Shown: piece by piece, positions 2,961-36,829 of the stretch | Numbering within the stretch: position 1 is the first letter of the stretch | Layout: each line of letters starts with the position of its first letter | DNA from: Macrostomum lignano | Lineage: Eukaryota | Direction of reading: 5' to 3' | Length of the DNA: 36,843 nucleotides | Assembly (NCBI GenBank): GCA_002269645.1 | Contig: NIVC01004730.1 | Span: 1 to 36,843, forward strand | Program-made: the position numbers and the translations under genes | The notes under the pieces: model-generated | What the model was told of the DNA's origin: nothing | Database searches by the model: none | What the model saw: only the letters and a program-made list of their open reading frames with translations

Positions 2961-3197
2961 TTATTACCCTCGCATTAAAGATTGGCCCGCGTAGTCAAAT
3001 AAAAGTGACTACTCTCATCATGGCGGGACTTTATTATTACCCCTCGGATTAAAGATTGGCCGCGTAGTCAAATAAAAGTGACTACTCTCATCATGGCGGG
3101 ACTTTATTATTACCCCTCGGACTAAAGTTTGACCCGCGTAGTCAAATAAAAGTGAATATTCTATCAAAGCGAGGCTTTATTACCCTGCGGATTAAGT
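2961..3197. repeat. ~73-bp tandem repeat, about 3.2 copies
   Basis: TTATTACCC...CCGCGTAGTCAAATAAAAGTGA... units start at 2961, 3034, 3107 and 3177. Confidence 0.9.
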
Positions 3198-13301: not shown

Positions 13302-13973
13302 GGATCTCCCGGTCACGTGATTTTGGGTGGCAACTAGCTCATCCAATCAGAAAATTCGACGCTCATTTTAACAAATCGGCTCAGCCAATCAGAATCGACG
13401 TGTTCCATTATAACAAACTGCGGTCCAGTTGGCGGCTATTTAAACCGGTGTTTTTGGCCCGCTCGGACTGCAACCTTCTTGCGACCGGGTGCTACCCTTG
13501 GCTCCACCGGCCAGGGACTGACCGTCGTTTCTTGATCCCCGGATTGCGACTTCCCCCCGTCATCATCAAGGACGAATCCCCCCGGTCATCAGCACTGAAC
13601 ATCAAAGTGAAGAGCATCACCTGCTAGCTATCAGCGAAGATTGTGACATCAGCATCATCCCGGGCCTACAGCTGCGAAGCACTAAGCCGATTCGGTCACC
13701 GTGGATTACCTGGTCTCCGGCTGTTGAGTTTCTGATTGGTTAGGTGAGAGGCTGCCCAAGGACTTCTAGACTAGCTAGTCTAGCTTGAGGCTGCCTAGAC
13801 TTGCTTGATTGGGTGATTCCTTATCTGTCCCCTGTTTCAGTAGCTGGATTAGGCGTACACTTTTGCTCATTTTGTTCAGTAGTGCTGTAATCGAGGCAGA
13901 AGTCATTCAATAATACTGCTAGTAGTCTAAAACTCCAATTCAATCTGAAGTGTGAAGTGATCTAAGGAGAAGG
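13302..13973 (+). repeat. Dispersed repeat copy 1: promoter-like 5' end or LTR of a retroelement
   Basis: Closely similar to 22583-23261. Contains CACGTG, two CCAATCAG boxes and TATTTAAA. Confidence 0.75.
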
Positions 13974-14747
13974 TTAAATCTAACAGTTATTTTTATCGGT
14001 TTTATTCCTTTGTTCGCCGATGGCTCAGATGAATAGCTAAGCTAGTAGGCGCCGGTCACAGTGGACCAATGGCAAGGCAGTTCTCAATCGATCAATCTAT
14101 CAAATAAGTTAGCGAAACTGCCAGTAGTGCAGAATCGGCGCCAGAGATGTTCTTTGTGCACTCTAAGTTCGCCAAGCGGCTCGGGTAATGAATCATGCGG
14201 TCTCTGAAGTTCGAGTTAGTCTATCATCAGCGCTATGAGAGGCTAGTTGGCGCGTTGAAGGCCAGAAGTACAATTCCTCGTATTTAGCAATGTAATAGTA
14301 CATGTAGCTACCCCATAGTCTCGCCACTGCAAGAATCCCCTGCACAAGTCCCCTATGTACCTGCATGGCCAATGCGATCTAGTCCCAGCAGTGTCCCTTA
14401 TCATCGGCTATGACTTCGAGATTGACAGCAAAAAGACACTAGTTGGCAGGTAAGTGCAAAGCCCCTTCTAGTCGGAAGCCCGATTTCGAGAGTCCCGGTG
14501 TGGTGGGCCAGGATATACGGGCTGGTGGCAGCGAGTTAGCTAATCTGCGGATTAACTAATTTCTACCTTCAAAATTCTCCCTGCTTGTCTCTCGCTGTCC
14601 CTCTCTTAGCTATAGGACCTAGACTGCTCGCCACACGATCAAGCTACCATGGGCTGACCATCTGACAGGAGTGGGGGGCCGGGACTCTAATTGATTTATT
14701 TCTGAGACCTGAGGCCTGAAGGCTTCCCCAAATGGGGGCCGGAAGGT

Positions 14748-14874
14748 CGAAACCCATCAAATTCCCCTCGCACCACCGTTCGACGTAAACAATGCCAGTG
14801 AGGCCGCGAAAAGAGCGGCCGGAGTCCAGCGCCGGAACGCTATCGCCGACATCATGTTCAGGCATGGGCCATGA
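14748..14874 (+). pseudogene. C-terminal remnant of a PIF/Harbinger transposase
   Basis: Reads ETHQIPLAPPFDVNNASEAAKRAAGVQRRNAIADIMFRHGP*. This matches the G-xx-RR-xx-I-xxxx-F end typical of Harbinger DDE transposases, and it is convergent with the Myb/SANT gene at 19688-20370. Confidence 0.5.
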
Positions 14875-15896
14875 CAAACTGCGTCGCTATCCGTACTGAC
14901 TTACCTCATGCTGCTTACGTTTGCTGTTTTTTCATATTTGTCTAAAACTTGATAAAGCCACGTTAAAGCGAGCGTTAAAGTGTCAACCCCAGCCTGTATA
15001 TGGACATTCAATGTTATCCTGCCGAGTGCGTTAATGTGGGCCATAGAGAGTGCGTGAATGCGGTTGCGGCCATAGACAAAAAGAGTAACTATGTTTTATC
15101 ATAGAACTTGAAACATAGAGGAGATTGAATACATGTATATTATGACTGAAGGTGGTGTATACGACAATTGCAAACCAAGCAATTATATAGAAAAAGAGTA
15201 ATAGCACAATTGCGGCAGTGTGCGTAGCATAATTCCCTTTAAAGAGTATATAGATATAGATATGTATATGTACCTGTAGCTGGTACTTATAAAAATGGCT
15301 GGCTGGCTGGCTGGCTGGCTGGAAGGCTAGTGGCTATATTTTCAGGAAATTGTGCTTAGCATAATTCCTAAATAGTGCGCGACATACCAGCTAGATAGAT
15401 AGCAAGCAGCAAGTGAAAATTATCAATATGCAATTGTACAGCTATTTCAATATAGTTATAAATGCCATGCAACATTGAGCGCTATTTCAAAGCGCTTTGA
15501 ACCCTTCAACCTGCAGCCATGTCCAACCAACCAGCCGACGAAGTAGTAGCTACTGCTAATATTAAAACCAACACTATACGACTATAGTCTAATAAACGCT
15601 AGGAAAAAATGTTATAACAATGGGCACGTAAACAATAAGAGAAAGGGATAGAACGCATAGCAACGCGCGCAATATGAGGCGAAGATGCATTGTAATTACG
15701 CTCGTATGAGATGAAAATATTGAAAAATATTGGGGCCAACATACATATAAAGAAGAGATGAGACAGTTACAACAAAAAAGAGAATCATCTACATTTCACT
15801 ATTACTAATTAATTCAGTTATGTTAATAGCAGCACTTATTAATTAATTAATTTACCCCAAGAAACACTCTAAGTTTGCATAAAAATTTGCAGCAAT

Positions 15897-16063
15897 GGTA
15901 AAGCGCACATTTACTAGATTTCATATAATGGTAAAGCGGTATTTAAAGTTTTAACGTTGTGGTAAAGCGGCCAACAGTTGAAATTTGCAGACAATGGTAA
16001 AGCGGTACTATTTAAAGTTTTAACGTTGTGGTAAAGCGGCAAACAGTTAAAATGGTAAAGAGG
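15897..16063 (+). repeat. Cluster of six GGTAAAG(C/A)G motifs arranged as a ~66-69-bp duplication
   Basis: Copies start at 15897, 15930, 15961, 15996, 16030 and 16054. Confidence 0.85.
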
Positions 16064-16166
16064 CGGTAGACGCGCAGCATGCCTTGAAATTGTGCAATTT
16101 TAGGCTCTAGTGAATTGTGCCATGCCATTTTCAGACAGCAGTATATCTATTACTATAACTAATTGT

Positions 16167-16201
16167 ATCATCATCATCATCATCATCATCATGATCATCA
16201 T
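16167..16201 (+). repeat. (ATC)n microsatellite
   Basis: atcatcatcatcatcatcatcatcatgatcatcat, read directly. Confidence 0.85.
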
Positions 16202-17193
16202 TGATTTCAAATTTATCGAAATGCAGCTGGATGGCACAATTCCATATTTATGCGAAGCACAATTTCGTAAAAATATATATACGAATTAGATATTATAATG
16301 AGAATTAGCTAACAAGAAGAAGACACAACTAGCTTGGGTCTGCAGCAGTCAGCCGTAGAGTCTTGATTATTTATATATATCAATATATATAATTTAGGGA
16401 AATTGTGCTAGGAACTATTTGGGAATTGCGCTACTGGGTAGCTATATTCACTAACTAGTAGACGACTACAAGCAATCTATACTGGTTCAAAAAAGTTGGA
16501 AATAAAAAGAACTCTGTATAGATAGATAAACATAGCAACTGTTGAATTAGGAATTTCTATAATTATTAAAAAAGATTTGTATGCAACAATTTACATTATA
16601 GCTTTGTCGCAATATTGTCACAGCTATTGTACCGACGATTAAAGTTAGACATTAAATCATCAATGACATAAACTATTGGTAAGGTAGCTATAATCCGCAG
16701 GTTTTGACAGCCTGGGTTGGATGCGTGCGGTACCTGCGCATAATCAATCAATCGATTGATCCCAAAATTATGCCGAGCACAAATTATTATCCGTTTCAGA
16801 ATTATAGTCGATTAGATGAGCTACTACTGCTGTACGTGTTAGTTTATTAACTAGCTATTTAGTTGCGATCTGCAGGTCATCTCACGCAACACCATGATTA
16901 ATATGCAATAAATGAATATATATATTTCTAGGGGTATAATTGTGCTCTCGTCATAATTTTGGTATTTCTGCTGCTGCTACTGCTAAAACAACAACTCTGA
17001 GTCTGGCATGCTATAGTCTGGTATATATTCTCTCACCGCCGTTGCGTCTGACACAGAATGCCAGACGTCGGTGCAGCACTCTAACTGATTGTCGTCTTCT
17101 TCCTCTTCGTTTGTTGTTGCTGCTGCAGCAGGGAGCGACTGGCCTCGGTAGCCGCTTTGCGCTTCGATTGGCGTCGCTGACGCTCCATCTGTG

Positions 17194-18326
17194 TTACTGG
17201 TTGTGATAGAACGCCCATCGACATGATCCCCGACGACGATTCTTTGTCTCGACTCTCGAGCAGTGAAGGTGATACTGTCGCCGGGCGGATGCTCGCTGAA
17301 GGTTTGGCTGACGATGCTCGCTGAAGTACCAGCTTGCGACGGTGGCTTGAACGACCGTCCGATTGTTCAGCATGGCGTTGGCCGCGTAGTGGCGCATCAA
17401 CATTGGCACAGAGGTTTCAAATAGCGCCGCTGACTGATCAACCAACTCCGGCCGCCCGCCAGCCACAATGTCCTGCTTGGAGCTCCGAAAAATATTCGGG
17501 CAGACGCCGGAACGACCGAGTATAGCTTTGGCATGATCGACAACCGCCTGGCTGAAGGTGGAAACGGACATCCGCTCACCTCGGTTGGTGCACAGCACAA
17601 ACGGCGAGTTGGCGACGCCGACCATGTCGTTGCAATGACGGCCGTTTCGCCAGGTGAGCAGCAGCTTAATGAATGCGGTCGGCACTGTGAGAACGCTGCA
17701 GCCGACAGACTTTATTTTCTTATGGCTGACCTGGCGACCAGGCAGCCGGATGGTCGAATAGCCGTTGTCATGATTGTCGCGCCGACTGGCGCTACCCGGC
17801 CGGATGTGCGCTATGCGGAGACCGCGCCATGGCCGGACGCGCAGCGGATGCATCGCAGTGGCATGCAGAGCAAATCGATTGCGCATCTTAACAAAGCTGT
17901 CCTCGTCGGCTGGACCAGAGGCGACCAGTGCGGCGTAGTCGTCCAGGATGGTGCGCCACTCTACCGGGGTTAACAGCTTCTCTTTCTTTCTGTCGTGGTG
18001 CAGCGGCGCATCCAGCCTATACTCAAGGTCGTGCGCTGGCGAATAGTTTTGAGCCGCTACTGAAACAGCTTGCACCTGTTTTCCAGCTCGGCTGCAATGT
18101 CGGCCGGCAGTTGCATGCGCTCCACGAGCGATTGAAGATGCGCGCGGTCGTGCTCAACGTAGGCTAGCATGTACTGCATGCATTTTATTAGCGCTTGCGC
18201 CCTGTTTCTAACTGTGCCGGAGCTATTGCTGGTGGCTCGAACCTCCGTTGCGGCGGTCGTTGGGTTGGCTAAGCAATAGACTAAATCTCGCGGCTCGACG
18301 ACTGGACAGCTCTTGTCGGCGGCGCC

Positions 18327-18359
<33 letters not shown>

Positions 18360-18872
18360 CATCTTTGAGCAGACCGACAAGATCAGCAAAAAGGTGTCAA
18401 TGAGAGCGTCAAGATGGCCGTCATAGGCTGGGTTGCGCACGCCTGTTGCATCGTTCCAATACAATGACTGGATTACACGCAGCTGCTTTATCAGCGGAGC
18501 ATCGGCCGAATACTGCGCCAATAGCGAGGAATGCCGCAGTGTAATCACAGCCAAGGCATCACCCGCCGCGATCGCCTCCTTGGCTGACATGGTCGTCGTC
18601 TTTGTCGTCGTCTCCGCTGCACCGCCGACGCTGACTGCCGCAGTCGAAGACGCGCTTGTCGCCGCCGTCACCGCCGCTACACCGCTGGCACCCGCCGCGA
18701 TCGCCTTCTCGGCTGACATGGTCGCCGACGCCGCCGCCGCTGCACCGCCGCTGCTTACTGCCGCTGCCATAGTCGAAGACGCGCTTGCCGCCGCAGACGC
18801 CGCCTCCGTTGCTGCACCGCTGGCACTGTCATCGTCGTTGACGATGTTGACGGGTTGATCACCAGATGGCAT
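17194..18872 (-). CDS. Tyrosine recombinase (about 559 aa), split by one single-base frameshift near 18075-18085
   Basis: ORFs 18057-18902 and 17194-18075 fuse if one A is added to GGAAAACAG (giving ELEKQVQAVS). Motifs are TVRNRAQALIK (core-binding-like), HPLR (Arg codon 17839-17841), HKKIKSVG, CPNIFR (Arg 17485-17487) and FETSVPMLMRHY (Tyr 17385-17387). The first ATG is at 18872. Confidence 0.75.
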
Positions 18873-19687
18873 AATGACGGTGGTGGCAGAATATTCTGTC
18901 AACTTAGCGCCGGCGGCGACCAGTTTTGCGTGCTTAGCTGAAGATGAACTTAACTGACTTAACTGAACGATGAAGTTGACTACAGAGCTGGAACGGCGGG
19001 CTGTCTTTTAATGGATGGATCATTATTATGCCTTGCACACTGTTTTCTGTTCCTGTTGCTGCTGCTGCTGATGCGATATACATTAAAGAAAAAGTGCTGC
19101 TAGGCTATAGCTACTGATTATTTGTCTATGGTAGAAAGACTCAGTTTGAGACTAGCTAAAGCAATACATATATATCTTTTAAGGGAAAAATGCTAGGCAC
19201 AGCTGCCGCGTTGTGCTATTAATAACATTTTTATACTAGGTAGTCTATGGCATGGCGTGTGAGTAGTGACTGACTGCCGCATTAACGCACTCTACCGCTT
19301 TAACACACTCGATATCGCTTTCACGCAGGAGCCGAATTAACGTAGCCGCGTTAACGCAATTTTTACCGCTTACACTCAGAAGCATATTTGTCAACGTTTG
19401 TTTAAAGCTTCCTTACTAGGTAAACTAATTGTAAGGTATAGCAATCTGACCCTAACCTGGCTAATAATATTACCGTTAGTAAATAACAACTGTGTTTTAC
19501 GTTTGTTATGACAACAATAAACGTTTACTGTTTTTTCTTACTTGTCGTCGTATATTTAAAGCGTCGTAACCACGTAAACTAATTGTAAAGTAACAATTTG
19601 ACTGTAACGTAAGTAACAATATTAACAATAACAAGTAACAAGCGTGCTTAGCAGTCCGAAAACCTATAATAATCTTTATATTGGCCC

Positions 19688-20370
19688 CTAAAGTTGCATA
19701 TACGAAGCAGACGCATCCCCGAAGTCACTTGTGTGCTGTTGCATCTGCGACTGTCGTTGGTAGGCCTCCCGTTCCAGCTCGCGCCGTTTCTTCGTACGAA
19801 AATACCTGAGCTGCTCGAGTAGCACCATTTGCTGAAGCTCTCGGCATTGCTCAGTCCTATCGTCTCAGTCGTCTCGTTGGTGACTCGTCGCGGCGCGGAT
19901 GCTCTCGCAGACTGCTGCCGTGATTGAACGCTCGCAGGCGTCGAGGGTTGGCGATCAGACTCCTCGCTGCTCGGGCTGGGTCTCGGGGGTGTCTGTGGTT
20001 CATCGTCGTCAGCAAGTTGTGATGCAACCCCACACACACGAGCGCCAGGGACCTTGGAAAAAACTGGGTTTTCCTCGATGTTGAAAAACTGTAGCATGGA
20101 TTCTTCCCACTTCTTCAGAACAATCTTTTTATTTCCGGTCTTCTTCAAGTCCGTCTTTGCTTTCAGCCGCGTTTTAATGTTCGAAAGTTTCTTGTTGATC
20201 TAATTCTTACAGGTTAGATTTACTCCATTATCCTCCAGGTCCTTTTGTATTGAGCTGAATGCTGCGTTCTTCTTCTCCATTGTACCGGGCGTCTTGGTTT
20301 TGTCGAGGACGACGGGGTAGCGAGAGACAACTTTTACGAACAACTCGTCTTCGGCGTCACTTCCGTTCAT
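19688..20370 (-). pseudogene. Myb/SANT-like DNA-binding accessory protein of a PIF/Harbinger element, with one in-frame stop and one frameshift
   Basis: ATG 20370 reads MNGSDAEDELFVKVVSRYPVVLDK..., then an in-frame TAG at 20200-20202, then INKKLSNIKTRLKAKTDLKKTGNKKIVLKKWEE...NPVFSKVPGA. After a frameshift near 19840 it reads ELQQMVLLEQLRYFR...YMQL* (TAG 19688-19690). Confidence 0.75.
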
Positions 20371-21090
20371 CGTGGCCCAAAGAAGTCGTACGAAGCTGGA
20401 AGGTCTCCGTAGGAACAAAAAAGCTAGATGTTTGCTTCTGAACTTAAGCTTAGCGTAAGGAACGAAAAATCTAGATGTTTGCCTCTGAACTTAAGCTTTG
20501 TGCATGTAACCTCCCAAAATTGAGAAGCGAGAGAAAAAGCAGTCGTGAGTAAGAAGTCCTACGAAAGCCGTAAAAAGCCGTACTAATGGCAAAAAGCCGT
20601 ATGAACGATTTTTGTCTGTGGCCAAAAGCATTCTGATCATTTACCCAAGCTACGGAGAATATTCTCAGAGTTTAAGTTTATGAACGATGAACGCCGAAGG
20701 CTCTCGGGATTTAAGTGAAATACCAACCGAAAAACCCATAGAATATCTTATTTAAACTACTTTAATTTTGCGGGATGTATTCAGATAATATAATATTCTT
20801 ACCATAGACAAAATTTCATTAAGAAATTTCTCGAGTCACGAAGGAAGAGAAGAGAGAAGCTCGCTTATTTAGATGCATACAATAATCCTTGCAATATCTC
20901 AGGGAAAGTGATCGATTAAATCCCGCAAAATAAAATCTATGTCAATAACCTCCCTGAAAGTGAGCTTTAAAGTGGTTTAATCTTTATTCATACCCCCGAT
21001 GAGCACTTGCTCAGACTCAGAGAATATTCTCACGATTGAGCAATTGCTCCGACTCTGAGTTTGAGAATTTTTTCCTGAGAAATTACTCTT

Positions 21091-21280: not shown

Positions 21281-21730
21281 AGGAACGCATTTGTTTCCCG
21301 ATTGATATTCGCATTGATATTCGAATTTTAACAAAAGCAAAATACTAAAAGCAACCCGCAGCATGAAACTTTACACAGCGTAAACTGCAACCGTGAAACG
21401 ACTATTGGTCAAGTTTCAGCTCGATATGTAACTTTGGCTCTGAGCTGGAGCGATTTTCGATGTGTTCCATTTAAAATACATGTGATTCCAAAATTCATAT
21501 TGATATTCGAGTACAGGTACTTCTGCTTCACTGATCTTGACGAAACTTTACACAGAGTAAACTGCAATCGTGAAACGACTATTGGTCAAGTTTCAGCTCG
21601 ATATGTAACTTTGGCTCTGAGCAGGAGCGATTTTCGATGTGTTCCATTTAAAATACATGTGATTCCAAAATTCATATTGATATTCGAGTACAGGTACTTC
21701 TGCTTCACTGATCTTGACGAAACTCTACAC
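21281..21730 (+). repeat. Non-autonomous element: ~85-bp head plus 177-bp tandem units (about 2 copies); Helentron/HINE-like architecture
   Basis: Unit starts (GAAACT(T/C)TACAC) are at 21365, 21542 and 21719. The same head and units occur inverted at 23261-23925. Confidence 0.8.
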
Positions 21731-22582
21731 ACTGGATGGAAGCCTTTCAATCCCGACTGGAAGCTAAAATTGTTTGACGCAACTGTCAGTTTGGTTTTTA
21801 TTGCAATGAATTCTTTAGAGTTTAGAGTTTAGATAGACCAACATGCAGTTGGTAAATCTACAGATGAAATCTTGAGGGAGACAAAAGTTATTTCACTTTA
21901 AAATTACGTATTTTACTTTGTTTACCCTGTTAATTACAAGGACAGAAGCGAAAACAGAAACGTAAAAAGCCAAAATCATGCAGTATGTGGGTGACTTGCA
22001 TGCTTTAAAGACGAATTATAAAACAGTAATTTACAATATTAAGTAACAGTTGGCAACATGTTTTAAGTACTGTAGATAAGTTATTGTAGTATATAGAAAA
22101 GTATTAGGTCCTGTACCACGTTGAAGCGAACAAACCAAACGTACTTTAATTGATTGTGTAAAAACAATACTACACGAAGAGGATCCTAAACAACGTTCGT
22201 GAATTAGGCCAGGCATTAGGTATGAGGATTTAACCTGGTACAGAAGTTTAAGGTTTTCCTAAAGCAAAAAAGAGTACATTGTGTAGCTGCTCCTCTCCCT
22301 CCACTTGATTCTTGATATTATGCATAACAGTCTTTGTTTTACACACATCCCAATTGCTAGACATTATAAAAGGCAAATTTTCAAGTGACAGGAACCGCTC
22401 ACGAAACGCTTCTGTCGCTCCAGTCTCTTTGATATCAGAGTAAAATTTATTTCGCTCTGCTCTCGTTTTACGTCTGAAACAGCCGACTTGTGCATCTGCA
22501 TGACAAGGACAACTGAAGTTACGTTATCCTTGTCCTTGCTGCATGATTCAGCTCTCAAAAAATTTCAACTCCCGGTCTCCCG

Positions 22583-23261
22583 GGATCTCCCGGTCACGTG
22601 ACTTTGGGTGGCAACAACTCAGCCAATCAGAAAATTTGACGTGCGTTATAACAAATCGGCTCAGCCAATCAGAATCGAGGTGTTCCATTATAACAAATTG
22701 CGGTCCAGTTGGCCGCTATTTAAACCGGAGTTTTTGGCCCGCTCGGACCCAACTGGGTGCCCTCTCTGGAACCTCCTGCTCCGCCACCGCCTCCTGGGAC
22801 TTTGGCCTAACTTAGACCTCCCGGAGCTCGACCGTCGTCTCTTGATCCCCGTATCGCGACTCCCCCCATCATCATCAAGGACGAATCCCCCCGGTCGTCA
22901 GCAGCGAACATCAAGATTAAGAACATTGCACCTGCTAGCTATCTGCGAAGGGTGTGACAGCATCATCCCGAGTCGAGAGCTGCGAAGCACTAAACCGATT
23001 CGGTCACTGTGGATTACCTGGTCTCCGGCTGTTGAGTTTCTGATTGGTTGGGTGAGAGGCTACCTAGACTTGCTTGATTGGGTGATTCGATCCCTTATCT
23101 GTCCCCTATTTCATAGCTGGATTAGGCGCACACTTTTGCTCATTTTGTTCAATGTTCAGCAGTGCTGTTATCGAGGCAGAAATCACTTTTAGTAGTCTGA
23201 ATTAGTAGTCTGAAACTCCAATACAATCTGAAGTGTAATTGAAGTGTAGTTAAGGAGAAGG
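22583..23261 (+). repeat. Dispersed repeat copy 2 (same family as 13302-13973), ending at the 177-bp repeat element
   Basis: Aligns with copy 1 from GGATCTCCCGGTCACGTGA to TAAGGAGAAGG. Confidence 0.75.
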
Positions 23262-23925
23262 AAACTTGAACAATAGTCGTTTCACGGTTGCAGTTTACTC
23301 TGTGTAAAGTTTCGTCAAGATCGGTGAAGCAGAAGTACCTGTACTCGAATATGAATTTTGGAATCACATGTATTTTAAATGGAACACATCGAAAATCGCT
23401 CCTGCGCAGAGCCAAAGTTACATATCGAGCTGAAACTTGACCAATAGTCGTTTCACGATTGCAGTTTACTCTGTGTAAAGTTTCGTCAAGATCAGTGAAG
23501 CAGAAGTACCTGTACTCGAATATCAATATGAATTTTGGAATCACACATGTATTTTAAATGGAACACATCGAAAATCGCTCCTGCGCAGAGCCAAAGTTAC
23601 ATATCGAGCTGAAACTTGACCAATAGTCGTTTCACGGTTGCAGTTTACTCTGTGTAAAGTTTCGTCAAGATCAGTGAAGCAGAAGTACCTGTACTCGAAT
23701 ATCAATATGAATTTTGGAATCACACATGTATTTTAAATGGAACACATCGAAAATTGCTCCTGCGCAGAGCCAAAGTTACATATCGAGCTGAAACTTGACC
23801 AATAGTCGTTTCACGGTTGCAGTTTACGCTGTGTAAAGTTTCATGCTACGGGTTGCTTTTAGTATTTTGCTTTTGTTAAAATTCGAATATCAATGCGAAT
23901 ATCAATGGGAAAACAAATGCGTCCT
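23261..23925 (-). repeat. Second copy of the head plus ~177-bp tandem-unit element (about 3.3 units), inverted relative to the first
   Basis: Reverse complement of the 21281-21730 head and units. Unit length varies by a few nt. Confidence 0.8.
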
Positions 23926-29446: not shown

Positions 29447-30714
29447 AGATTAGCATATCAAGATTGAATTTGGCTTTTCTATTATCAAGATCTCTATCTC
29501 CATTTTACAAAATCTAAATATACTAAATCTCTAAGGTTTGTTTGTTAGTCAGACAGTCAGTCAATCTGTTGTTAATTTTTTAGAACCCTCTGGCCAATTT
29601 TTTTCAAATTTGCATTAAAAATTGTAATTTTTCAACAATCATGCATAACTTTTTTGTTGAAAAATTTTAATGGAAAGTAGGTCAAATATTCAAAAAACTA
29701 TTTTTAATGCTTCCAATGGATGCTCTATTGCTAAATTTAATTGTTCAATTCAACCATTTAGTCCTCTCCTTGACCAATGTACAATGTAGGTTGTACATTC
29801 ACAATGATCCTTTGCACAATTTGTGTGGTTGGTTGAATTTTATTATTGTTTACCAACCAATCTAATAGATAAATGATAAAAGAGTGGGTGCATAGGGGGG
29901 TTAAAAAGCTGGCCTGAAATTTATCAACCCCCTAAACTGCACTGGGGGCTGGAGGCAGTAGCTAATGTGCCCAATTAATTCAGATTCATTTGGCCAATTG
30001 GTATATAAAATTTATACCAATTCTTAGTGAGTCAACTATTTGAAAAACAAAAACAAATGCAGGCTTGGGTTGAGGAATGAAGTGGGGTGCAAGGGTTTTG
30101 TTGGATAGATTAAAGCTCCCAATCAGTTTTCTTGCATCTTTTATTGCAGAATATTCCAAGAGAAATTGATCACTGGTGCATAGAGTGGCGACTTTTCAAT
30201 GTTGCTGTATATATATAAAATTTCAAACAGTGAAAAAATAAATTTGGAAGTTGGTCAAATGATGTTTTTCTTGCTTTTAATGTTTGGATTTTGAATTTGA
30301 ATGGCCCATTGGGGCTTAATGCACTAGTTTAGACTACTTATTTTATAAAATTTGTCTTAATGCTTATTTGCTTTGCTTTTGGGTAAGATTTTAGGATTAC
30401 TAAGACGCAAATTAGTAATCCTAATCCTGATAACCACATAATATCAGGACATACCAAGGCATATCAGTACACACCAAGGCACACCAGGACACACTAAAAC
30501 AAAGGCTAAAAAGTTTTATTTTCAGCAAAATGTACATCAAATAGTATTACAGAATTAGCAATAATATATAATAATATCCAAATAGATTGCTCAAATTTAT
30601 ATTTCAAACTCCCACATGTTAATACTGTTTGTTACATTGTAAACAGTATTATCTGGGTTTCATCCATGATTATAAATTATCATTATGCAACATTTCAATG
30701 CGGTCAAAGCAGAC

Positions 30715-31106
30715 ATGTCAATTCTGGTAATGTCCCTTTGCCTAGCCGGCAGTCTGGCGCTCCTGTTCCTGGCTGTCTACCTGTTGATGACCCTCTCCGA
30801 TCTGGACTGCGACTATTTGAATGTTCGGGAAGGCTGCGACCGGCTCAACAAATGGGTATGGCCGGAGGCTGCTGTGGCCGCTGCTGTGCCCATCCTGCTG
30901 CTGCTGACCCTGCACTGGGTCCTGTTCCTGCTGTCAGCGCCTCTGCCCTGCTACCTCATTTATCGCTGCTTAACCCTGCCGAAAGGTCAGATCGGCTTGT
31001 TCGATCCGTTCGAAATCAATAATCGCAACTATATTAAACGGGCGATGTACTTTTGCACCTTTAAGCTCGTGCATTACCTGCTTGTGTTCTTTGTCCTGCT
31101 GTACAG
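30715..31106 (+). CDS. CNIH4: Cornichon homolog (CNIH4-like), exon 1
   Basis: Reads MSILVMSLCLAGSLALLFLAVYLLMTLSDLDCDYLNVREGCDRLNKWVWPE...GLFDPFEINNR...KLVHYLLVFFVLLY, with the cornichon LSDLECDYLN and DPxEI motifs. A GT donor follows at 31107. Confidence 0.9.
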
Positions 31107-31131
31107 GTGCGTTTGGGTTCACTTTATCTGT

Positions 31132-31535
31132 CTGAATCTGCCACACCGCTCCCTGCTCTCCCAGTGCCTGAATCTGCCTCACCGCTCCCTGCTCCCCCAG
31201 TGCCTGAATCTGCCACACCGCTCCCTGCTCTCCCAGTGCCTGAATCTGCCTCACCGCGCCCTGCTCCCCCAGTGCCTGAATCTGCCACACCGCTCCCTGC
31301 TCCCCAGTGCCTGAATCTGCCTCACCGCTCCCTGCTCCCCCAGTGCCTGAATCTGCCACACCGCGCCCTGCTCCCCCAGTGCCTGAATCTGCCACACCGC
31401 TCCCTGCTCCCCAGTGCCTGAATCTGCCTCACCGCTCCCTGCTCCCCCAGTGCCTGAATCTGCCTCACCGCTCCCTGCTCCCCAGTGCCTGAATCTGCCT
31501 CACCGCTCCCTGCTCCCCCAGTGCCTGAATCTGCC
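31132..31535 (+). repeat. Intronic 35-36-bp minisatellite, about 11 copies
   Basis: Unit CAGTGCCTGAATCTGCC(A/T)CACCGC(T/G)CCCTGCT(C)CCC. Confidence 0.95.
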
Positions 31536-31589
31536 ATATTTTAATTAATTTCAACTCCAATCTAAAGAGTCCCGCCAACTCAATTGCAG

Positions 31590-31620
31590 CATAATCTACT
31601 ATCTGGTGGCCGGTGAATAG
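31590..31620 (+). CDS. CNIH4: Cornichon homolog (CNIH4-like), exon 2 (terminal)
   Basis: Acceptor TTGCAG ends at 31589. The phase-2 join gives ...LLYSIIYYLVAGE* (TAG 31618-31620), 140 aa in total, the expected cornichon length. Confidence 0.8.
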
Positions 31621-34050: not shown

Positions 34051-34239
34051 AATGAGCGCGAGAGGACTCGCGGCAGCAAGCTCATCATCAAGATGGACGG
34101 CACCCAGACTGTCATCACCGACCCGGCCAGCGGCCAGGATAAAAAATTTGCCTTCGATTATTCCTATTGGTCACACGACGGCTTCACGGAGCAGGCAAAC
34201 GGCTACTTTGCCCCGGCCAACCCCAAGTACGCTGATCAG
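34051..34239 (+). CDS. KIF28: Kinesin-3 (KIF28/KLP-6-like), coding exon 2
   Basis: Reads NERERTRGSKLIIKMDG...KKFAFDYSYWSHDGF...KYADQ, followed by a GTGAGA donor at 34240. The FDYSYWSHDGF segment is characteristic of KIF28/KLP-6. Confidence 0.9.
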
Positions 34240-34291
34240 GTGAGAGATTTGGCCGGTTGCTCCTGGCGTGCCATGCAACTTCAGATTCCTA

Positions 34292-34595
34292 CAGTGAGCT
34301 GCCATCCCCATCTCACCAATCCTTCAGTGAGCTGCCCTCCCCATCTCACCAATCCTTCAGTGATCTGCCATCCCCATCTCACCAATCCTTCAGTGATCTG
34401 CCATCCCCATCTCACCAATCCTTCAGTGAGCTGCCATCCCCATCTCACCAATCCTTCAGTGATCTGCCATCCCCATCTCACCAATCCTTCAGTGATCTGC
34501 CATCCCTATCTCACCAATCCTTCAGTGATCTGCCATCCCTATCTCACCAATCCTTCAGTGATCTGCCATCCCCATCTCACCAATCCTTCAGTGAT
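34292..34595 (+). repeat. Intronic 33-bp minisatellite, about 9 copies
   Basis: Unit CAGTGA(G/T)CTGCCATCCCCATCTCACCAATCCTT. Confidence 0.95.
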
Positions 34596-34662
34596 TAAGC
34601 ATATTTAGGAGTAAACTTCAATCATTCCAACGCTAAAATCCACTATCAATTCTCAATCGCAG

Positions 34663-35882: not shown

Positions 35883-36067
35883 GTGAAGACAATTTTACAG
35901 TACAGATTGCGCAATTAGATGACCAGACTGCGCCTTTTCGGTCCAGGGTAGCAACCACACAGAGACAGATGGTCGAGAGCTGTTGACCCATCATTTATCC
36001 TCAAAAGTATGAGAAAAATCAATCATGTTCGTAGGTTAGAAGATTAGATAAGCAGCTCTCGAAAAAC

Positions 36068-36829
36068 CTTAGTGCTGGCGCCCCTTGGTGCTGGCGCCCC
36101 TTGGTGCTGGCGCCCCTTGGTGCTGGCGCCCCTTGGTGCTGGCGCCCCTTGTGCTGGCGCCCCTTGGTGCTGGCGCCCCTTGGTGCTGGCGCCCCTTGGT
36201 GCTGGCGCCCCTTGGTGCTGGCGCCCCTTGGTGCTGGCGCCCCTTGGTGCTGGCGCCCCTTGGTGCTGGCGCCCTTGGTGCTGGCGCCCCTTGGTGCTGG
36301 CGCCCCTTGGTGCTGGCGCCCCTTGGTGCTGGCGCCCCTTGGTGCTGGCGCCCTTGGTGCTGGCGCCCCTTGGTGCTGGCGCCCCTTGGTGCTGGCGCCC
36401 TTGGTGCTGGCGCCCCTTGGTGCTGGCGCCCCTTGGTGCTGGCGCCCCTTGGTGCTGGCGCCCCTTGGTGCTGGCGCCCCTTGGTGCTGGCGCCCCTTGG
36501 TGCTGGCGCCCCTTGGTGCTGGCGCCCCTTGGTGCTGGCGCCCTTGGTGCTGGCGCCCCTTGGTGCTGGCGCCCCTTGGTGCTGGCGCCCCTTGGTGCTG
36601 CGCCCCTTGGTGCTGGCGCCCTTGGTGCTGGCGCGCCCCTTGGTGCTGGCGCCCCTTGGTGCTGGCGCCCCTTGGTGCTGGCGCCCCTTGGTGCTGGCGC
36701 CCCTTGGTGCTGGCGCCCCTTGGTGCTGGCGCCCTTGGTGCTGGCGCCCCTTGGTGCTGGCGCCCTTGGTGCTGGCGCCCCTTGGTGCTGGCGCCCCTTG
36801 GTGCTGGCGCCCCTTGGTGCTGGCGCCCC
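36068..36829 (+). repeat. Intronic 16-bp minisatellite, roughly 47-48 copies
   Basis: Unit GGTGCTGGCGCCCCTT, with occasional single-base losses in the C run. Confidence 0.97.

Follow-up and report, generated by a model that had tools for sequence, protein, structure and literature searches.

A candidate single-gene mobile element of Macrostomum lignano with a 10-bp direct repeat, inverted motif-bearing ends and a possible tyrosine recombinase

Contig NIVC01004730.1 of the Macrostomum lignano assembly GCA_002269645.1, analyzed here over its whole length of 36,843 bp (hereafter, the window), contains at positions 14933-19392 a segment of approximately 4.45 kb that very probably is a true insertion of a mobile element with a single, orphan gene. 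The insertion landed, with similarly high probability, in a ~154-bp repeat of the host genome. In an earlier note, this segment was described as a Crypton-like DNA element of an animal that encodes a tyrosine recombinase (YR). The animal origin is borne out by the provenance of the contig; furthermore, the product of the cornichon gene located at 30.7-31.6 kb of the window shares 97% identity with a protein of Macrostomum lignano. The element and its target consist of the following features:

14933-14942, plus strand: left 10-bp direct repeat, CATATTTGTC; the left flank aligns to a paralogous repeat unit up to the end of this 10-mer
14943-15262, plus strand: left subterminal region, with four copies of motif A on the plus strand and the inverted block 15199-15252
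15204-16945, no strand assigned: field of motif B (AATTRTGC; also written AATTGTGC), with 11 copies versus one in the other 32 kb of the window
15893-16062, plus strand: internal array of five to six motif-A-like sites ((C/T)AATGGTAAAGCGG) in a 69-bp tandem repeat
16985-17396, minus strand: possible acidic C-terminal tail in a third frame, 137 stop-free codons, putatively joined to the preceding part
17194-18075, minus strand: coding part 2, 293 codons, with a YR-like pattern, coding-like G+C content and a weak match to YR profiles (residues 130-183/197)
17815-17817, 17710-17721, 17485-17496 and 17386-17388, minus strand: YR-like residues of part 2, namely R87, K119-122, N194-x-x-R197 and Y230, respectively
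18017-18145, minus strand: switch of frame from part 1 to part 2, through a 1-nt indel or a 59-nt GT..AG intron
18057-18902, minus strand: coding part 1, 281 codons, with an Ala/Thr/Ser-rich N-terminus and a 129-bp (43-aa) tandem repeat at 18560-18826; no family match
19150-19382, minus strand: right subterminal region, with four copies of motif A on the minus strand and the inverted block 19169-19221
19383-19392, plus strand: right 10-bp direct repeat, CATATTTGTC; the right flank aligns to the paralogous unit from the start of this 10-mer
19521-19649, plus strand: uninterrupted paralogue of the target (~154-bp repeat unit with a single CTTACTTGTC); the rejoined flanks align across the junction

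The exact 10-bp repeat that the earlier note placed at both ends is present at these two positions and nowhere else in the window. Taken alone, the pair is weak evidence and is not significant because the window contains 152 exact 10-mer pairs located 3-6 kb apart. It becomes meaningful because an empty-site paralogue is found in the same window and because the pair exactly brackets the interval that holds 13 of the 14 motif A sites and 11 of the 12 motif B sites of the window. Once the flanks are rejoined (14501-14942 plus 19393-19900), they align with the unit at 19521-19649 at 75% identity over 131 bp (E=4e-19), without interruption at the junction; in the three-way alignment, the left flank tracks this unit to the end of the 10-mer and the right flank tracks it from the start of the 10-mer, which the unit itself holds once, in the related form CTTACTTGTC. 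The paralogous unit can therefore stand in for the empty site within the window, and the behavior of the flanks is the mark of an insertion that left one copy of the target on each side; it could equally mark a precise excision in the paralogue. The empty site predicted in the earlier note, ...TTTTTTCATATTTGTCAACGTTTG..., thus has a counterpart in the unit, which reads ...TTTTTTCTTACTTGTCGTCG..., that is, in a paralogue rather than in an empty allele; for this locus, the empty site would read ...GCTGTTTTTTCATATTTGTCAACGTTTG.... The target at 19385-19649 consists of at least two ~154-bp repeat units in tandem, with 73-80% identity, and the unit contains a motif-A-like sequence, TTTAAAGCG.

The abundance of 10-mer pairs leaves room for an explanation without any mobility, under which the segment, bracketed by a chance pair of 10-mers, would be an ordinary fast-evolving host locus or a rearrangement in a repeat array. 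The observation of one copy and the location of the flanks within a local repeat are compatible with this explanation. Nevertheless, we consider it very improbable, given that the alignment of the rejoined flanks with the paralogous unit continues unbroken precisely at the 10-mer, that both the motif enrichment and the inverted similarity of the ends cease at the 10-mers, and that the G+C content of the segment is unlike that of its surroundings. A retroposed insertion, mediated by a long interspersed nuclear element (LINE), was rejected: there is no poly(A) tail at either end and no reverse transcriptase (RT).

A similarity search found no second copy of the element in the window. The paralogous contig NIVC01005181.1, which was reached via the cornichon gene and ends 6.5 kb upstream of its own cornichon copy, short of the insertion site, shows no similarity to the element either. 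No related loci were found with the element protein in metagenome and viral contigs; the 16-mer end motif has chance single matches only in metagenome contigs, without similarity to the element; and exact-protein look-ups with four start-codon variants of the element open reading frames (ORFs) and one neighboring ORF returned nothing on record. For the single copy examined, mobility and target specificity may accordingly be regarded as candidate properties, and the lack of further copies in the window and in the paralogous contig counts against the interpretation as a mobile element.

The subterminal regions are related to each other in inverted orientation. When ~320 bp from the left end and the reverse complement of ~230 bp from the right end are aligned globally, the score is 116.5, compared with 43.4 +/- 6.5 (maximum 61) for shuffled sequences and 40.5 in the direct orientation, so that the patchy inverted homology of about 300 bp reported previously is upheld; the best block proposed at that time, near 15199 versus 19169-19221, was also recovered (15199-15252, 85% identity over 55 bp, E=1e-8). 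This similarity is due largely to the repeated motif A (9-16 bp), GKKAAHGYG (fuller form, GAGTGCGTTAATGYGG; also written GAGTGCGTTAATGCGG). The copies inside the element show a consistent orientation: four at the left end and five in the internal array (15897-16038) are all on the plus strand, and four at the right end are all on the minus strand. The arrays are presumably bound by the protein that the element encodes. At the tips, there is no inverted repeat: the left end starts with TAAAACTTG (or TAAAACTTGA) and the right end, reverse-complemented, with CTTCTGAGTG, without any shared inverted bases.

On the assumption that the element circularizes, the junction would read ...ACCGCTTACACTCAGAAG[CATATTTGTC]TAAAACTTGATAAAGCC... 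(in the circle form, ...CTCAGAAG-CATATTTGTC-TAAAACTTG...), to be compared with the inferred empty site ...GCTGCTTACGTTTGCTGTTTTTT[CATATTTGTC]AACGTTTGTTTAAAGCT.... In the circle junction and in the empty site, the hexamer TAAAGC lies on the right side of the core at a distance of exactly 10 nt, and it is at +10 in the paralogous unit as well; on the left side of the core, GCTTAC is located at 9 and 14 nt in the junction and the empty site (window frequencies per position of 3.4e-4 for TAAAGC and 1.2e-4 for GCTTAC). TAAAGC forms the core of motif A, so that around the crossover the target resembles a weak version of the putative end-binding sites. Such a resemblance of attB to attP (the target and donor attachment sites) would be predicted by site-specific recombination and not by a staggered-cut transposase. 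This comparison was made post hoc and on a single insertion, which limits its weight. The window contains neither a tRNA nor an Rfam family that might have been the target.

Several of these features invite comparison with the Mutator superfamily, which produces 9-11-bp target duplications, in agreement with the perfect 10-bp duplication flanking the element. The long terminal inverted repeats of this superfamily would correspond here to a patchy inverted similarity, ~85% at best over 55 bp and absent from the tips. Ends with inverted subterminal similarity over several hundred bp and with short, oppositely oriented motifs are typical of Mutator, hAT, CACTA and P elements, and those Mutator-like elements (MULEs) that are devoid of terminal inverted repeats (TIRs) likewise lack clean termini. 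The ends of Mutator-like elements span hundreds of bp, carry transposase-binding motifs and sometimes match poorly at the termini. The segment could then be a Mutator-like cut-and-paste (DDE) class II transposon, either non-autonomous or with a transposase too divergent to recognize, in which the 10-bp repeat would be a staggered-cut target duplication and the motif arrays would be transposase sites; the weakness of the YR evidence for the ORF, discussed below, is in line with such an origin. We deem this serious rival somewhat unlikely. No MURA-type DDE transposase was detected: at E<=10, Pfam showed no MULE, DDE, SWIM or zinc-finger domain, and the protein searches yielded no relative among transposases; the tips beside the duplication have no inverted bases in common; the target resembles the joined ends beyond the 10-mer, which a staggered cut does not predict; and the ORF has no host parent gene, unlike the captured fragment expected of a Pack-MULE-type element.

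Within the element, a G+C-rich block at 16985-18902 (58% G+C) looks coding on the minus strand. The ORFs of this strand are probably coding and part of the element, as indicated by their adjacency on the same strand, by the longest stop-free run (319 codons versus 151 +/- 34 in shuffled sequences) and by the G+C content by codon position, which in the 293-codon ORF (0.61/0.47/0.67) is similar to that in the host cornichon ORF (0.60/0.36/0.72); because no host gene matches the ORF, a captured gene fragment is argued against. Of the "one YR gene" of the earlier note, a single minus-strand coding region is present, distributed over two frames (18902-18057 and 18075-17194) or, with 17396-16985, possibly three; no search identifies it as a YR gene. 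The first change of frame falls between 18145 and 18057, where either a 1-nt indel, for example in the T4 run at 18079-18082, or an intron at 18075-18017 could account for it. The second falls on an imperfect tandem repeat of 25 nt at 17288-17337, and with one unit less the tail would be in frame. The third-frame tail may thus join the protein, in which case the product of the three parts comprises 631 aa. Enumeration of introns that could join the frames was uninformative, with too many GT..AG options. With one or two changes of frame in its gene, this copy is possibly inactive, unless the changes are due to a short intron or to indels in the assembly. The 129-bp (43-codon) tandem repeat in the element gene, at 18560-18826, has ~77-80% identity and consists of Ala/Thr-rich units of the form MSA(E/K)(K/E)AIAAG....

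The non-coding DNA of the element (14943-16984 and 18903-19382, ~2.5 kb) is motif-rich, as the earlier note had it, and its two short motifs are nearly confined to the element. The left stretch has a G+C content of 36%, neither stretch holds a notable ORF, and there is none of more than 59 aa in 14933-16939. The copies of motif B are mostly paired, 10-25 bp apart in direct or inverted orientation, which yields ~9 pairs; degenerate versions of this motif occur near the right end.

To assess the possible YR identity of the gene product, we employed YR profiles built from the alignment of Crypton, DIRS and prokaryotic YR domains in Additional file 4 of PMC3212892, which was machine-read and is noisy. 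The strongest signal came from the comparison of the ORF with the pooled alignment of 48 YR sequences using hhalign (score 24.0, P=0.002, probability 14%, ~46 columns in the middle of the catalytic domain), although with seven profiles tried the effective P is nearer 0.01. None of 300 shuffled sequences reached this score (12.3 +/- 2.4, maximum 22.4), and five control ORFs yielded probabilities of at most 0.8%. The hidden Markov model (HMM) derived from the same 48 sequences gave 4.2 bits, a value that 6 of 500 shuffles equaled or exceeded; a forced HMM alignment covers the middle segment only. The aligned stretch, TVPTAFIKLLLTW...SPFVLCT..RGERMSVSTFSQAVVDHAK...NIFR, is collinear with the YR segment 'CPv..l..yl / plF / pls..t / HxxR', and in the profile alignment NIFR falls on the HxxR box. 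By eye, a pattern can be traced that consists of GLR87, K119-122, N194-I-F-R197 and MRHY230, with a spacing of 33 aa between R197 and Y230; in Cre and XerD, ~32 residues separate the corresponding Arg and Tyr.

A considerable body of results weighs against the assignment of the protein to the YRs. Searches of Pfam with the separate ORFs, the joined 631-aa protein and a 183-aa core, for the latter two even at E<=10, produced no match, including none to Phage_integrase, DUF3504 or GCR1_C; the earlier note was thus correct in stating that DUF3504 and GCR1_C features are absent, and likewise in reporting no RT, DDE, capsid or helicase, as no such domain appeared in the Pfam searches of the ORFs and the joined protein. 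The element protein had no match in PHROGs or NCBIfam, none in a sequence search of the PDB, and none in a word-indexed search of 5.8 billion proteins (two runs, one at E<=10). An exhaustive phmmer search of 1.84 billion representatives returned two matches only, both to giant fasciclin-repeat proteins. These candidate relatives were judged spurious, with scores that stem from a repeated weak match. Pairwise phmmer and BLASTP comparisons with 48 published YR domains gave nothing below E=0.4. The HMMs of Crypton A, I, F and S and of DIRS scored the ORF within the range of 500 shuffles (-1.4 to -1.7 bits for CryI, CryA, CryF and CryS), and segment-wise global profile tests were weak (z=-0.15 for box I, 1.8 for the middle segment and 1.5 for the C-terminus). 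AlphaFold2 without an alignment produced unusable models, with a predicted local distance difference test (pLDDT) score of 35 for the 293-aa ORF and 34 for a 176-aa core, and hence no fold support; a Foldseek search with the pLDDT-35 model, meaningless on such a model and disregarded, found nothing below E=0.96. The first catalytic His would be replaced by Asn194, and the second His/Trp would be Phe219 or Glu220. An Asn at the position of the His is also present in the baculovirus VLF-1 row of the published alignment (PMC3212892 Additional file 4). Taken together, the by-eye motif pattern and the weak match to the pooled profile weakly suggest a YR identity, and with it the Crypton label; from these sequence comparisons, a YR-like catalytic domain is a reasonable lead, with a probability approaching but not reaching even, and not a finding.

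That the protein is an orphan among about 15 billion proteins is compatible with a mobile element driven by a recombinase of some class not yet described, distinct from both YR and DDE enzymes, or with an integrated small episome or plasmid-like replicon, in which the motif fields would serve replication or partition and the orphan protein would be unrelated to known recombinases. In the same vein, the 2-kb non-coding field, with its ~9 motif B pairs and the internal motif A array, exceeds the needs of a simple transposon, and circularization would join both ends into an imperfect palindrome of ~600 bp around the core. We regard these possibilities as improbable: there is no positive evidence for another catalytic class, the sole signal above noise is to YR profiles, and orphan status alone carries little weight, proteins of transposable elements often being absent from annotated proteomes.

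Our best reading of the sequence, offered tentatively, is that of a new single-gene mobile element, for which conservative site-specific recombination of the att type, by a YR, appears to be the most likely mechanism. This mechanism is favored because the tips are not inverted, the target resembles the joined ends, the hhalign match exceeds the shuffles, NIFR falls on the HxxR box and the spacing between Arg and Tyr is appropriate. The joined ends of the element would make up a complex site akin to attP, in which the 10-bp core is flanked by a motif array on each arm; this site would recombine with a look-alike target, and the core would be left at both junctions, as proposed for Cryptons and Starships. 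It is conceivable, if unlikely, that the element represents an undescribed superfamily of animal DNA transposons, with either an extremely divergent YR (Asn for the first His) or an entirely new recombinase, that integrates in the att manner through a palindrome-like complex attP made of inverted arrays of a ~14-bp motif around the 10-bp core. To our knowledge, a lambda-like architecture of that kind has not been described for eukaryotic transposons, and in the literature we found no published eukaryotic transposon with this combination of features, nor do we know of one.

Judging by analogy, the element seems to work most like a Crypton or a Starship-type element, in that it has a single gene, lacks RT and DDE, has asymmetric tips and shares a short repeat with its target; the 10-bp duplication and the long motif-bearing ends equally recall Mutator-like elements. 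CryptonA and CryptonI reportedly are found in animals, and CryptonF and CryptonS in fungi and stramenopiles (Goodwin 2003; Kojima and Jurka 2011, PMC3212892). Like these, the element is compact (3-5 kb for Cryptons), contains essentially one gene and no RT or DDE transposase, has tips that are not inverted and short direct repeats at the ends that equal one copy of the target, as seen here for one insertion, and is proposed to move via a YR circle. The description of the segment as Crypton-like is sustained in part, with respect to a compact DNA insertion in an animal, a 10-bp repeat found once in the target, inverted motif-laden ends and a single gene without RT or DDE, but not with respect to the YR and Crypton identity, the Crypton and DIRS profiles being at the level of shuffles. 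The protein also fails DUF3504, GCR1_C and Phage_integrase along with the profiles of Crypton A, I, F and S, and its first His would be Asn. The anatomy differs as well, which is a further argument against the Crypton interpretation: published Cryptons have 4-6-bp repeats, shorter than the 10 bp observed here, and animal Cryptons are without terminal repeats (PMC3212892). Cryptons are characterized by the lack of terminal inverted or long direct repeats, whereas the ends analyzed here score far above shuffles and show, over ~300 bp and together with motif arrays, an inverted subterminal similarity that is missing from animal Cryptons (PMC3212892; PMC13465315); among the Cryptons, one oomycete family, CryptonF-2_PI, is listed with 602-bp TIRs.

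Starship and Enterprise elements resemble the segment in that their direct repeats, of variable length, are a core shared with the target, their ends sometimes are asymmetric TIRs and they show a target-site preference (PMC13465315). In contrast to the segment, Starships are tens to hundreds of kb in size, carry cargo genes, are confined to filamentous fungi and encode a DUF3435 'captain' YR that is readily found by Pfam, none being found here. Lambda attP/attB, the yeast 2-micron plasmid with FLP, and Euplotes Tec3 offer a complex motif-armed donor around a short core shared with a simple target, or long inverted repeats combined with a YR gene; these belong, however, to a phage, a plasmid and a ciliate, no relationship to them was found at the sequence level, and the element has no accessory genes. 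Tec elements and FLP are listed among the eukaryotic carriers of YRs (PMC3212892).

Eukaryotic DNA elements moved by YRs are rare and poorly understood, and the mechanism of animal Cryptons has never been pinned down because their ends are not defined. An animal element that offers sharp junctions, an identifiable core, candidate binding sites in arrays and an empty site that can be reconstructed would make the mechanism testable, and Macrostomum lignano is a model in which transgenesis is feasible. Should the enzyme belong to a new recombinase class, a new family would be added to the transposon catalogue; if, conversely, other copies had unrelated 10-mers, the segment would amount to an unusual Mutator-like element that matters chiefly to the annotation of repeats.

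Elsewhere in the window, a foldback-type element at 21285-23922 has inverted arms (21285-21731 and 23472-23922) that are 97% identical and built of 177-179-bp tandem repeats; it encloses a 194-codon ORF (22608-23192) without a Pfam match. The region of this central ORF (22583-23261) has a direct match of ~700 bp, at 77% identity, to 13302-13973, located 1 kb to the left of the studied element, which therefore sits between two related repeat fragments. Just to the right of the insertion, on the minus strand at 19648-20418, there are two adjacent ORFs of 166 and 72 codons, the second of which has a sub-threshold match to mTERF (E=0.002, 17.4 bits versus a cutoff of 23.1); they may belong to a gene, of the host or of a transposon, that has the target repeat as its 3' flank. 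The annotated, spliced cornichon gene at 30706-31620 (143 aa), with a paralogue on NIVC01005181.1, includes in its span an 11-copy 36-bp tandem repeat at 31132-31535. Additional tandem repeats are found at 2961-3182 (three copies of 73 bp, 90% identity), at 34287-34595 (9.4 copies of 33 bp, within the ORF 34093-34608) and at the contig end, where 48 copies of a 16-bp unit (CCTTGGTGCTGGCGCC) at 36067-36829 can also be read as a 249-codon ORF.

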